DNA of 64,000 nt from Oikopleura dioica (taxonomy: Eukaryota; Animalia; Chordata). Made by a program: the position numbers and the translations under genes. Positions 53,245 through 59,064 of the stretch are shown here, in pieces. The stretch covers positions 13,206,001-13,270,000 of the forward strand of contig OU015568.1 in assembly GCA_907165135.1 (NCBI GenBank), in the 5' to 3' direction. Position 1 is the stretch's first letter. Each line of letters starts with the position of its first letter. The notes below the pieces were generated by a model that was not told where the DNA came from, made no database searches, and was given only the letters and a program-made list of their open reading frames with translations.

Positions 53245-54536
53245 GGCTGCTCCTGGATCGCGCGGAATCCTGGATCGCGCGGATCCCGGATCGCGCGAAT
53301 TCCTTGATCACGCGGATCGGGTGATTCAGGATTCTGCGCGATCCAGGATTTCGAAAAATCTGAAATTCAATTTACAATTTTGCTTTTCTTATCAAAAATG
53401 GCCAGAACTGTTGTTAACTTCTCAATACACGGGCGCGCGACTAAGCGCTCAAAACACGGGGTCGGGTGAGGGGACCACAATGCATTATTCAGCCCCCCGC
53501 GGCGCGCAAAATTCGGAGTGTGATAAAGAGCGCTCAAGACTTTTAGCTCTAACTTGCGTTTCCGGCAAGCAAAAAGTTTCAATACATATCGCTGGAAAGG
53601 TTGAACACTCTCCTATCAAGATTTACAATTAATTTTGCAAAATACTTTTTGGATTTACAGCTGATGAGTGAAAGATAAATCCGGTGCAAAACGCCACCAC
53701 TTTTGAGAAAACTTCCGAAATTTCACAAAGTGGTTCGTTTTCGACACCTTAGCTCACATTTCAAAAATCAGGTCAAATGGATTATCACAACAGAAATTAC
53801 GGCGGCTCAAAGTCGCCGTGGTCGGTTGAACCGACCACGTGTATTGAGAAGTTAAGCCATGTAATTCTTATCTTTTCAATTTAGAAATGTCAGAATATCA
53901 AATAAATATAGAACCTTCAACGAATTCATCATTCAACGATTTTAGTTGTTTGATTTCCGGGACCTACTTTTATGCGCAGGGATTAGCAGGGCGCAAGTTC
54001 CATTTGGAGGTGACAAATGGTCCATTTGAAATGGATGGCAGTCCCGGATTTTCATAGGGACAGATTAGGATAAAAATTGAGAGCTATTCTTATTTAAGAT
54101 AAATTATTTATCATCGATTCCCTTCATTTTCTTCTTTTGATTCTTTTCAAAACGTTTCTCAAATAAATAGCTGTCCCTGCGAAAATCCGGGAATACCTTC
54201 CATTTGTCACCTCCAAATGGAACTTGAGCGCTGCTAATCCCTGCGCATAAAAGTAGGTCCCGGAAATCAAACAACTAAAAATAGTTGAATGATGACTTCG
54301 TTGAAGGTTCTATTAATTTGATATTCTTACATTTCTAAATTGAAAAGATAAGAATTTCATGGCTTAACAACAGTTCTGGCCATTTTTGATAAGAAAAGCA
54401 AAATTGTAAATTGAATTTCAGATTTTTCGAAATCCTGGATCGCGCGGAATCCTGAATCACCCGATCCGCGTGATCAAGGAATTCGCGCGATCCGGGATCC
54501 GCGCGATCCAGGATTCCGCGCGATCCAGGAGCAGCC
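53245..54536. mobile_element. Mutator/Foldback-like non-autonomous element with ~370-bp TIRs
   Basis: 9-bp TSD TTTAAATTC at 53236-53244 and 54537-54545. The left arm is 53245-53417 plus 53856-54063, the right arm is 54171-54536, and the spacer is 107 bp. The outer ends are built of GGATCGCGCGGA(A)TCC modules. Confidence 0.88.
53418..53851. mobile_element. TTAA-specific (piggyBac-like) MITE, 434 bp, nested in the left TIR of the foldback element
   Basis: Perfect 14-bp TIRs CTTCTCAATACACG. TTAA is duplicated on both sides (53414-53417, 53852-53855), whereas the right arm has a single TTAA. Confidence 0.88.
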
Positions 54537-54760: not shown

Positions 54761-55236
54761 TTAGTCATCTTGGGAGACAAAGTCGCCAAGCCAGTCAGAT
54801 CGGTTAGTTGAGCCGTCAGTTCCATCGTCGTTGAAAAAGTTCGTTTCGACGCAATCCGTAGCTCCATCGCAACATTGTCGGCAAACGGAATTCTCGATTT
54901 TGATATTGTTGAAAGGTTTGCACTCTTGCCACTTCCACGGGCCGCGAGCGTTGTTGCTCTTGTTGTTGAGGCAAGCGTCGACTGCTTTGCAGCCAGCCTG
55001 GACGAAGTAAGTCTTCCCTCGCCGTTTTCGGAGTGTCACTTCACATGATGTTTCGTTTGGTTGGCACTCGACTGTGGTAGAACTGGCTAAGCACTCGGCA
55101 ACGCTGGCCGCATTGCAAGTCATGCAGCTAATAAATATTTTTTAACAAAAAAAAAACCAAAAACTTTGACTTACGAAAAAGGATCAGCAGCTTCTTGAGA
55201 AAAGACTACAGCAGTGAAAAAGGCGAAAATCTTCAT
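54761..55236 (-). CDS. Small secreted Cys-rich protein (three-finger-like / larvacean Cys-repeat type), copy A
   Basis: Signal peptide MKIFAFFTAVVFS and one GT-AG intron. Mature sequence is CMTC...C...C...C...GC...C...C...SVCRQCC...C. Confidence 0.75.
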
Positions 55237-55921: not shown

Positions 55922-58228
55922 TTACAATAGTTCTAACGTATAGGCAGTCGGCCACAGATATTTGACGCCTTCTATCATTGGATCGATAAGGTAACGAGGA
56001 GAATTAACAGGAAGATTATAGCTTTTAGCTCCACTTGAATCTTTTTGTCGTGTTAATATTTTATCGAAAAAAGTCATAAAGTTCATTTGTCTTCTGACAA
56101 TAACAAGAGACTCAAGATATAGATTATACTGAAAGAAAATAAACACATTCCTTTTATAACGAACTCGTCTTCGTTTCTGTCGTTCTTAACAATTTTATCA
56201 ATGACAACTGAGTGAAATCCGACTTCTCCTTGAGATAAATAACATATTGTTCCAATCATCGGCTCACACGCCTGCAGATCGTACCTAAGAAAAATTTCTC
56301 TCTGAATCATCTTTCTTGGCGAAAACGAAGCTCTGCTGAAATACTCTGGATACTTTTCTTGCATCTTTGTCATATGCAAAATGATTTTCCAACCTTCATC
56401 TTCAAGGTACGATTTTTTGGTAAGCCTATTCAGAACTCTTATTAATGCTGTTGTCTGGAGATCTTGCGTGCTCGTATCGATTTCCGGTTCATGTTGTTGA
56501 AGGTCGAGGCCTTCAGCTGTACGAGGAACCAAATTGAAGATGATTGTAAGAAGAATATTTTTTTGTGTCAACAAACTATCTCCAAGAACATCTTTTTTGT
56601 CATAAAAAAGTCGACGAGACAGCAGAAACTTCTTTATGCAATATCGGAAAATGTCGGAGACCGCGAATATTGTGCAAAGATAGGTGCTTTTCTGATCAAA
56701 CGCTGTCCGTGAAATCATTAAACTTCTTGACAGCATAATTTGCTCCAATGAAAAGTCAACATTCTCGAAGTTATGAGAACATAAAGTTCTCACTCCTGCT
56801 TGTTCGATTCCAAAAATATTGGAATTGAAATTGACTTCTACAATCGACTGAGCTCGTTCGACCATCTGCCAGATTGTTAAATGATAGGGTCTGTTTTCTG
56901 AGAAGGCTGTCATAATATTTTTAAATTCTGTTCGAAAGTTCAAAAGACCAGCTTCTGTGAATCGATCGTCAATAAATAATTGTTCTTGATAATTTTCAAT
57001 ATGATGGAAATTGATTTTCCAGGCACTTTCCCAGTCGCAAAGAAGGAAAATCATGATCCGGAAGAGGGGTTGATTATTTGCAACGCCTTGATAAAGCTGC
57101 TGGCCAACGCAAAACCCGGGAGTTCCTCCCTTGAGTCCCCCGCCATCAGTTATCTTAAACTTTGACCCATTTCGGATGTATCCCATTTCACGAAAGCTCT
57201 TTTTTCCAGTCGCTTCGCACATAATTCCAAAATCTGCGAGTCGCAATTCATATTTTCCTTCTTTATTTTTGATGAGTAGAATGTTTTGAAGCTTCAAATC
57301 AAAATAAAACAATTGTAGTTTCCATAAATAAGCGAGAACTTCTTTAAGTTCTATGACAATCCTTTTACGTTCAGTTATGTCAATTAGATTCCGTTGCAGA
57401 GCAGTTGAAAGATCCATGTCAGCCCGTGAAGAAACTGTTATCCATCCAAGACAATCCTGCTCATTTGTGTCGTCCTCGTGAAAAATTTCAACGTTGACGT
57501 AATTGAAAAGGAGGTTTTTATGATATGGGAACAAGCCTTCTTCTTTGTGGACTTACTTATTTGCATTACAGACTATGTGGAAAATTTATACTTGATGCAG
57601 AATCAATGCGTAGGGAAAAGTAAATCTTTTCCTGAAAGATTGTCCTGATTTACATGATAAAATTGATCAGCCTTATTTATCCTCAATTTTACATCAAGTC
57701 GAACTGTTTTGCTAAAAAGCGCCGACGAGAAGGGGTGAAAACGGTAGACAAATTTCTTTTGTAAAATCTGATCGCCAAGCACCAACGCCTCCCCTCCACA
57801 GGAGATAATAGCGGGGTAAAATAGCTGAGATTCCAATTCTACCCATTTTCCCTGAAAAGGATGATGAGGAATACGATAGTTTAACTTACTTGATTCCCTT
57901 CTAAGTTGTGTTTATGAATTTGTATAAAGCGTCTTTTCGGGTATTCAAAGATGAAATTTCTAATCACCCATTTTTGATATGCGCTCATCGAATGACTCTC
58001 TAGGAATTCTCCTTGGTCATCAAGAACGTCCATTTTCTTCGTCACTGTGTCAAAATTAGCGACTGACCATTCCAAATAATTGTTCTTATTTAAGAAATTC
58101 ATTCGATTGACGGACTCAATAAGCAAGCTTCGACCATTTCTGTGACATTCCCGAGCGATCTCTGGGCGTTTGAGTAGCCTTCGGATTTTCTCTTCAGTGA
58201 AATTATTACAAAATTCTGAAAGCCCCAT
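55922..58228 (-). CDS. Divergent protein-kinase domain fused to a C-terminal papain-fold cysteine-protease-like domain
   Basis: Kinase motifs are ISCGGEALV, HKNLL, YFDLKLQNILL, LADFG and GGTPGF. The C-terminal part has FDQKSTYLCTIFAVS (Q-x5-C) and GFHSVVIDKI. Confidence 0.75.
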
Positions 58229-58420: not shown

Positions 58421-59064
58421 TTAGAACATATCAGTGGTCCAGTCAGAGACGGGTCGAGCTGCAGCTTCGAGACTTTCGAGCCAGTCTTTGCCGTCGTTGG
58501 GATCAGCAGTTGGGAAGCATTGGCGGCAAACGGAAGAGAGTTCAGCGCCGTTAGCTAATAGTTGAATGAATAGCTTGTCTTGATTGATTGAAAACTTACC
58601 GTCTGTAAGAGCAGTAGTGCACTGGCCATATGAGTTTTGCTTCATGTTGTTCTTGCATGCTCGCTTTTGCTTGCATCTCATGGAGACGGACTCAATCGCA
58701 CCACCTCGTCGTCGTTCTTCCAGCTGGCATGATCCTTGATTAGCCTGGCAGTCGACCTCAACGCCGGAGCTAAAATATTTTTACACGTTTTTTTTTCAAT
58801 CTGTTGAAGCAATTTTAATCCTTTGCGACCTTTTTGCTGCCATAAAGGTTAAGTTGCCTACAATACTCAAAAAATTAGTTTTTCTTTTCAAAAATACTTC
58901 CTAATTTAAAAGAAATTGTCTGATAACAAAAAAACATTCAATGTTATTCGCTATGAAATTTTTACTTACGCAACACAGTCCGCAACAGTTGCTCCGTAGC
59001 ACTCAAAGCACTTGCTGATTGTTTGAGCAGAAGCGAAGGAAGCGATGATGGCAAAAAGTTTCAT
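58421..59064 (-). CDS. Small secreted Cys-rich protein, copy B (paralogue of 54761-55236)
   Basis: MKLFAIIASFASA signal peptide and two GT-AG introns. KCFECYGATVADCVASGVEVDCQANQGSC...CKQKRACKNN...SVCRQC aligns with copy A. Confidence 0.75.

Follow-up and report, generated by a model that had tools for sequence, protein, structure and literature searches.

The window, that is, the whole stretch of 64,000 nucleotides of Oikopleura dioica DNA that was analysed, carries on its minus strand a gene of four exons and three tiny introns (positions 58228-55922), the predicted product of which has about 687-692 residues. An uninterrupted open reading frame of 483 codons (56083-57534, minus strand) leads from a kinase C-lobe to the Gln, Cys and His of a peptidase domain, and the original prediction that one frame passes from a kinase through Gln-x5-Cys to a His was thus confirmed to the base. 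The exons were handled separately in the searches. The features of the gene (window positions, minus strand throughout) are listed below.

57890-58228 (-): exon 1, 113 codons, ATG at 58228, ending in ..EGNQ; family-specific N-terminal region
57852-57889 (-): intron 1, 38 nt, GT-AG, with a canonical GTAAGT donor at 57889
57632-57851 (-): exon 2, kinase N-lobe, aligning with the family sequence ISEGGEALV...AVR(V/I)
57803-57786 (-): SCGGEA, the Gly loop, in exon 2
57752-57741 (-): FVYR, with Arg at the expected beta3 Lys, in exon 2
57553-57631 (-): intron 2, with a non-canonical GA donor at 57631 (CAG/GAAAAG)
56151-57552 (-): exon 3, kinase from beta4 onward, continuous with the peptidase domain
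57306-57283 (-): YFDLKLQN, the catalytic loop, read directly in exon 3
57234-57226 (-): DFG, in exon 3, which also holds TPGF and the CDW of helix F
56700-56656 (-): FDQKSTYLCTIFAVS, in exon 3, holding the Gln and Cys of the peptidase
56694-56692 (-): CAG codon of Gln281 (numbering of the 483-codon frame), in exon 3
56676-56674 (-): TGC codon of Cys287 (same numbering), in exon 3
56220-56191 (-): GFHSVVIDKI, in exon 3, with the CAC codon of His441 at 56214-56212
56166-56152 (-): EFVIK, the last stretch of exon 3 before intron 3
56041-56150 (-): intron 3, 110 nt, GA-AG, phase 1 (AAAG/GAATGT ... AAAAAG/AT)
55922-56040 (-): exon 4, including the stop at 55924-55922; the protein ends in ..YLWPTAYTLELL

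Exon 1 is 49% identical over 91 aa to an exon of a relative from Bergen (copy B, see below), and the junction at intron 1 (..NQ/GKWVE..) agrees with the family motif G(K/E)W. For intron 2, candidate acceptors are the AGs ending at 57552, 57543, 57540 and 57537 (80-95 nt), and an alternative GA donor candidate lies at 57604; the relative L053 requires a homologous GA donor, CAG/GAAAGG, at this intron. No GT-AG solution for introns 2 and 3 keeps the frame open, only GA-AG pairs do so, and GA-AG introns are numerous in O. dioica, with RNA support (PMC7072748). The position of exon 2 also refines the original prediction: the coordinates of all motifs held, but SCGGEA and FVYR lie in another frame than the later motifs, on a separate upstream exon.

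Intron 3 is the sole splice pair that gives ..FVIK-D-SSG.., and if it is not removed the frame ends 22 codons past EFVIK, at 56083. An Asp codon, split between G at 56151 and AT at 56040-56039, falls at the family Asn position; exon 4 completes it and encodes the last strand, ..YLWPTAYTLELL. The relatives L053, L054 and L055 are intronless at this site and read continuously through F(L/I)(V/I)(I/K)DS(Y/I)G. In the environmental fragment P0029, which is 96% identical, the same frame is kept and the exon is conserved, while the read-through past EFVIK differs, as expected if intron 3 is an intron. EFVIK, first read as the strand following the His, needs exon 4 for the third residue, Asp; both this putative catalytic residue and the last strand hinge on the predicted GA-AG intron.

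Two Cys-rich open reading frames flank the gene (54761-55123 and 58421-58681, both minus strand) and both contain SVCRQC; beyond this motif they are not significantly alike, and neither has a Pfam match. They were rejected as exons of the gene, since stop codons intervene and matching frames are found at corresponding places on the Bergen contig. One of these, L055:7820-8329, shares 65% identity over 170 aa with the downstream frame of the window. About 1.4 kb downstream of the gene there is a 173-nt inverted repeat (53245-53417 / 54364-54536; 99% complementary, 946 nt between the arms), inside which a second, 81-nt pair is nested (53940-54020 / 54200-54280); it looks foldback or MITE-like.

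The kinase part of exon 3 matched the Pfam family PF00069 (Pkinase) at residues 42-115 of the exon-3 frame with 35.5 bits (E 9.2e-9; the cut-off is 31.7 bits). Its YFDLKLQN and DFG align to HFDLKPEN...DFG of DAPK1, and the family kinase profile matched TLK2, CDK9 and DAPK1 from beta4 to DFG (E 2e-10); a PDB sequence search with the gene and the family returned kinases only. In the family and in the window copy alike, the Asp, Lys and Asn of the catalytic loop and the DFG motif are retained; the window copy has Tyr for the His of HRD. The kinase motifs common to the family are a Gly loop of the form (S/E)GGEA and AVR where VAIK is expected (VYR in the window copy), and throughout the family TPGF stands instead of APE and the CDW motif of helix F is kept. 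The oddities noted in the original prediction (degenerate Gly loop, Arg at the expected beta3 Lys, no APE) are real and family-wide. It should be mentioned that the Arg is assigned to the beta3 Lys by motif order, the profile match to solved kinases starting only at beta4; with the kinases of the family the window kinase aligns throughout.

The peptidase domain was studied in an alignment of 147 sequences composed of deposited proteins, exon pieces from 42 loci of the genome and metagenome fragments. Four residues are conserved in it, Gln (79/86), Cys (81/88, with Ser in 6), His (84/89) and Asn (77/88), the Cys standing six residues after the Gln, the His 133 after the Cys and the Asn 16 after the His. 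In papain the corresponding spacing is 6, 134 and 16. The window copy shows the order Gln281, Cys287, His441 and then, by the predicted splice, Asp. Against a family profile of 142 rows that excluded its own clade, the peptidase part of exon 3 scored 90.9 bits (E 1.7e-29), with Gln, Cys and His on the family columns and the residue after FVIK on the Asn column. This score, together with that for Pkinase, argues that the observation is not due to chance. The proposed clan CA layout of the Gln, Cys and His is thus borne out by their conservation, order and spacing in the family and by the fold of a paralogue model described below.

Variants of the domain were also met. Two near-identical paralogues (L004:811-2817 and L005:856-2577; C4, at ~3.23 and 3.29 Mb) have Ser for Cys (..FLSVPFSV..). 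In the 686-aa protein P0157 from an ENA metagenome the order is peptidase-kinase-peptidase, two papain-like domains flanking a kinase C-lobe, and the second peptidase copy (..HAVILFD..FKNS..) is closer to papain's own motifs.

At the level of sequence profiles the domain stands apart from described peptidases. In the exon pieces and the C-terminal domains of the relatives Pkinase was the sole Pfam family to be matched, and no peptidase family was matched even at E 10. There was accordingly no match to the C1 profile (PF00112), and no signal peptide or prodomain is visible in the gene, as had been predicted; the C39 profiles (PF03412/PF13529) gave no match either, and the resemblance to C39 is structural and feature-level only. 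Ordinary C1 peptidase genes are present elsewhere in the same genome. When the family was compared by hhalign with C1 peptidase fragments of that genome, the result was not significant (probability below 1%), and the single local path paired DQKSSNLC with DQGQCGSC.

The fold was modelled with AlphaFold2 on the paralogue P0008:418-697 (147 rows; pLDDT 84.4, pTM 0.77), which is only ~25% identical to the window copy; the latter was placed on the model through a profile alignment. In this model helix 58-73 begins with the Cys, and strand 188-199 contains the His. A model of the closest relative, P0002:67-383, built on a shallow alignment of 17 rows, reached a pLDDT of 44. The window copy is without ~34 residues that are present in L053, L054 and L055; in the P0008 model they make up a helix and a hairpin that separate the Asn strand from the last one.

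In a structural search of 48,161 chains with the P0008 model, all 50 listed matches were papain-clan peptidases (Z 10.0-5.8), including xylellain, Der f 1, cathepsin B, PCAT1/ComA, UfSP and ATG4. A second structural search gave 57 chains with Z of at least 8, papain among them at 9.4 (151 residues aligned), and all 50 top matches were likewise clan CA peptidases; the top Z was 10.4, and a value of ~10 exceeds the usual best background score of 7-8 by a moderate margin only. The start offsets place Gln52 and Cys58 of the family on the catalytic Gln and Cys of papain, cathepsin B, cathepsin C and ComA, a mapping that presumes that the first few aligned residues are gapless; we take the catalytic pairs to be 19/25 in papain, 23/29 in cathepsin B and 11/17 in ComA. 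Shape matches in the ESM Atlas were C39 and C1 peptidases, and the language-model features of P0002, a member of the window clade, were nearest to C39, C58 and IpaJ peptidases. A papain-like fold, as originally proposed, is thus supported by the paralogue model and the structural searches but not by Foldseek, which against the PDB gave nothing at E <=0.001 (best 0.025; the weak top matches were staphopain and ComA). Taken together, these comparisons identify the C-terminal domain as a predicted, very divergent papain-fold (clan CA) peptidase domain.

Such a fold also occurs in enzymes of other activity, and the domain might serve to detach ubiquitin or a ubiquitin-like modifier, or might have amidase or acyl-transferase activity, the kinase-like part recruiting its substrates. 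We regard this as unlikely: like the cytosolic UfSP, ATG4 and ZUFSP, which were among the structural matches at Z 6.7-7.8, the domain has neither a signal peptide nor a prodomain and no conserved disulfide cysteines, but the top matches are C1 and C39 peptidases rather than deubiquitinases, the family shares its Gln-6-Cys and His-16-Asn spacing with papain and ComA, and no ubiquitin-binding feature was seen in the window copy.

The gene belongs to a large family. In the genome searched (64,281,565 bases in 19 pieces) the kinase and the peptidase domain each gave at least 90 matches, mostly as adjacent pairs. Among 1.84 billion representative proteins the peptidase domain found 209 matches; the top 150 of these are mostly short fragments, and the named ones that were looked up all come from O. 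dioica. The relatives are deposited as 'unnamed protein product' or 'Protein kinase domain-containing protein' (e.g., P0003, P0008), and a literature search on an Oikopleura kinase expansion or a kinase-papain fusion yielded nothing relevant. Judging from these searches, the kinase-peptidase family, of roughly 100 genes and undescribed, appears to be specific to Oikopleura. The statement that no standard chordate protein has a kinase-papain architecture agrees with these results.

Within the family the window copy is isolated, its nearest other relative in the genome being 33% identical. In the tree, the window copy and the metagenome contigs L053 and L054 split from 40 other copies with an SH-aLRT of 100% and are set apart by a very long branch; the third putative catalytic residue of this clade is Asp. 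The window gene is thus, as far as the tree indicates, the sole local copy of an old, deeply separated side branch. The intron positions were also compared. At loci L002-L042 most paralogues have an intron at position ~162/163 of the peptidase profile and several copies are intronless, and the window copy has no intron there and one after FVIK instead. Intron positions turn over within the family.

The sequence of L054 is that of copy A on the Bergen contig FN653271.1, and the same contig carries copy B (CBY14282.1). The copies compared are as follows.

Window copy: all parts of the kinase present, the only such copy among these
L053: ten codons of the kinase catalytic loop absent, ~700 nt insertion
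Bergen copy A (FN653271.1, L055:974-2984): tandem duplicate, intact peptidase; N-terminal and kinase N-lobe exons absent upstream
Bergen copy B (FN653271.1, L055:4392-6838): tandem duplicate, intact peptidase, annotated as two genes; 314 nt of the kinase (DFG through helix F) replaced by 417 unrelated nt

The kinase is deleted, interrupted or incomplete in three relatives, all with an intact peptidase, and no relative has lost Gln, Cys, His or Asp. Counterparts of the two Cys-rich open reading frames of the window lie on the Bergen contig, one on each side of copy B. Synteny is thus conserved between the window and the Bergen contig, with a tandem duplication in Bergen. Pairwise pN was 0.13-0.34 against a pS of 0.33-0.84, and omega was 0.18-0.33 where dS was unsaturated; between the window copy and its relatives synonymous sites are saturated (pS 0.70-0.84, pN 0.20-0.31). 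These values indicate that the peptidase part is under purifying selection. What is new for the window copy is its clade position, its synteny, the pattern of selection and the kinase losses around it.

These data also bear on the suggestion that the window copy is a decaying or non-functional gene from which no working protein is made. Two non-canonical introns, an odd kinase, the ~34 residues missing in comparison with L053, L054 and L055, the stop that is reached soon after EFVIK if the last intron stays unspliced, and the decay of the kinase part in relatives would all fit with it. We nevertheless consider decay quite improbable, because the 483-codon frame has stayed open despite saturated synonymous sites, none of the four peptidase residues or of the kinase catalytic-loop residues is missing, the environmental fragment P0029 retains the same frame, and O. 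dioica has many GA-AG introns that are supported by RNA (PMC7072748).

We therefore favour, with fair though not high confidence, the explanation that the gene encodes a family-specific N-terminal region of ~110 residues, an atypical kinase and a predicted C-terminal papain-fold cysteine peptidase, without a visible signal peptide. That the kinase and the papain-fold domain belong to one gene, as first proposed, is seen from the single exon shared by the kinase C-lobe and the Cys-His core. The peptidase is probably enzymatically active and the protein probably cytosolic, and its two domains may be coupled; control of the protease by the kinase in a signalling or defence module, as first proposed, is conjectural. 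The peptidase would then work as other clan CA enzymes do: Cys287, at the start of a helix, would be activated by His441 on the facing strand, the Asp, as the first residue past the last intron, would orient the His, and Gln281, six residues ahead of the Cys, would form the oxyanion hole, so that a peptide or isopeptide bond could be cleaved in the cytosol. Since relatives of the window copy have lost kinase elements but kept the peptidase, the kinase would not be an obligatory catalyst; it would have a regulatory, ATP-binding or scaffold role. Thus the effector role probably falls to the predicted peptidase, and the Arg-for-Lys kinase is probably dispensable, with a regulatory or scaffold function; the three relatives in which an intact peptidase accompanies a damaged or incomplete kinase argue against an obligatory catalytic relay from kinase to protease, which seems unlikely in the window clade.

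A more far-reaching idea, to which we give little credence, is that the family forms an animal-specific intracellular surveillance or conflict system with a kinase-like sensor or decoy in cis with a papain-fold executioner, the window clade being the ancestral housekeeping form and the source of the fast-duplicating sensor copies. Least probable is a double pseudoenzyme, with both domains inert and the protein serving only for binding or as a scaffold: Arg at the expected beta3 Lys, Tyr for the His of HRD and Ser for Cys in 6/88 members would suit it, but Ser can still act as a nucleophile, and ~90% of the family and all of the window clade have preserved Gln, Cys, His and Asn/Asp despite 50-75% divergence, a pattern typical of active sites.

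Protein kinases and papain-fold peptidases are each very well known. Here the two are found in a single chain, in ~100 genes of the smallest free-living chordate genome, and no published description of this was found. If both parts of the fusion of atypical kinase and predicted peptidase are active, it would make a compact two-enzyme switch that combines phosphorylation with irreversible cleavage. The peptidase domain would also found a new family of clan CA. The window copy, being single-copy and syntenic across O. dioica lineages, is a useful comparator, and the natural variants with a broken kinase and an intact peptidase hint at which half bears the selected function. Should the surveillance idea be true, O. 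dioica would have built a new module of innate immunity or of self/non-self recognition.

The kinase part can be compared with the KSR type, a pseudokinase with Arg at the beta3 Lys position. KSR-type pseudokinases likewise combine Arg at the Lys of VAIK with a retained catalytic loop and DFG; the window kinase has no sequence relationship to them beyond the kinase fold, and its own Arg is placed at beta3 by motif order only. Compared with the O. dioica family as a whole, the window copy shares the N-terminal region, the kinase oddities and the peptidase motifs, but it is only about 25-38% identical to the other members and single-copy in the genome, has Tyr for the His of HRD and Asp for Asn, lacks an N-terminal hydrophobic segment and differs in intron positions.

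Among known peptidases, UfSP1/2, ATG4 and ZUFSP have the papain fold, are cytosolic and have no prodomain; their structural scores (Z 6.3-7.8) are below those of C1 and C39, and they have no sequence similarity to the O. dioica domain. The C39 domains that process bacteriocins (ComA, PCAT1) reached Z 9.3-9.8 with an rmsd of 2.8-3.0 over almost the whole small domain. They resemble the O. dioica fusion in having no prodomain and in being fused to an ATP-using module, and their Gln-6-Cys and His-16-Asp arrangement has Asp as the third residue, as in the window clade. However, they are bacterial, sit on an ABC exporter and cut double-glycine leader peptides, whereas the window gene has neither a transporter nor a PF03412 match. 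The papain family C1 (papain, ervatamins, cathepsins B/L/S, Der p 1, xylellain) differs from the O. dioica family in its signal peptide, prodomain, disulfide pattern and PF00112 match; the O. dioica family for its part has an enlarged helical lobe, an extra helix-hairpin before the last strand and a kinase in front, and the window copy has Asp, at His+21. C1 nonetheless provided the best matches of all (Z 9.4-10.4 over 150-165 residues), and the two families share the same Gln-Cys-His-Asn order with near-identical spacing.
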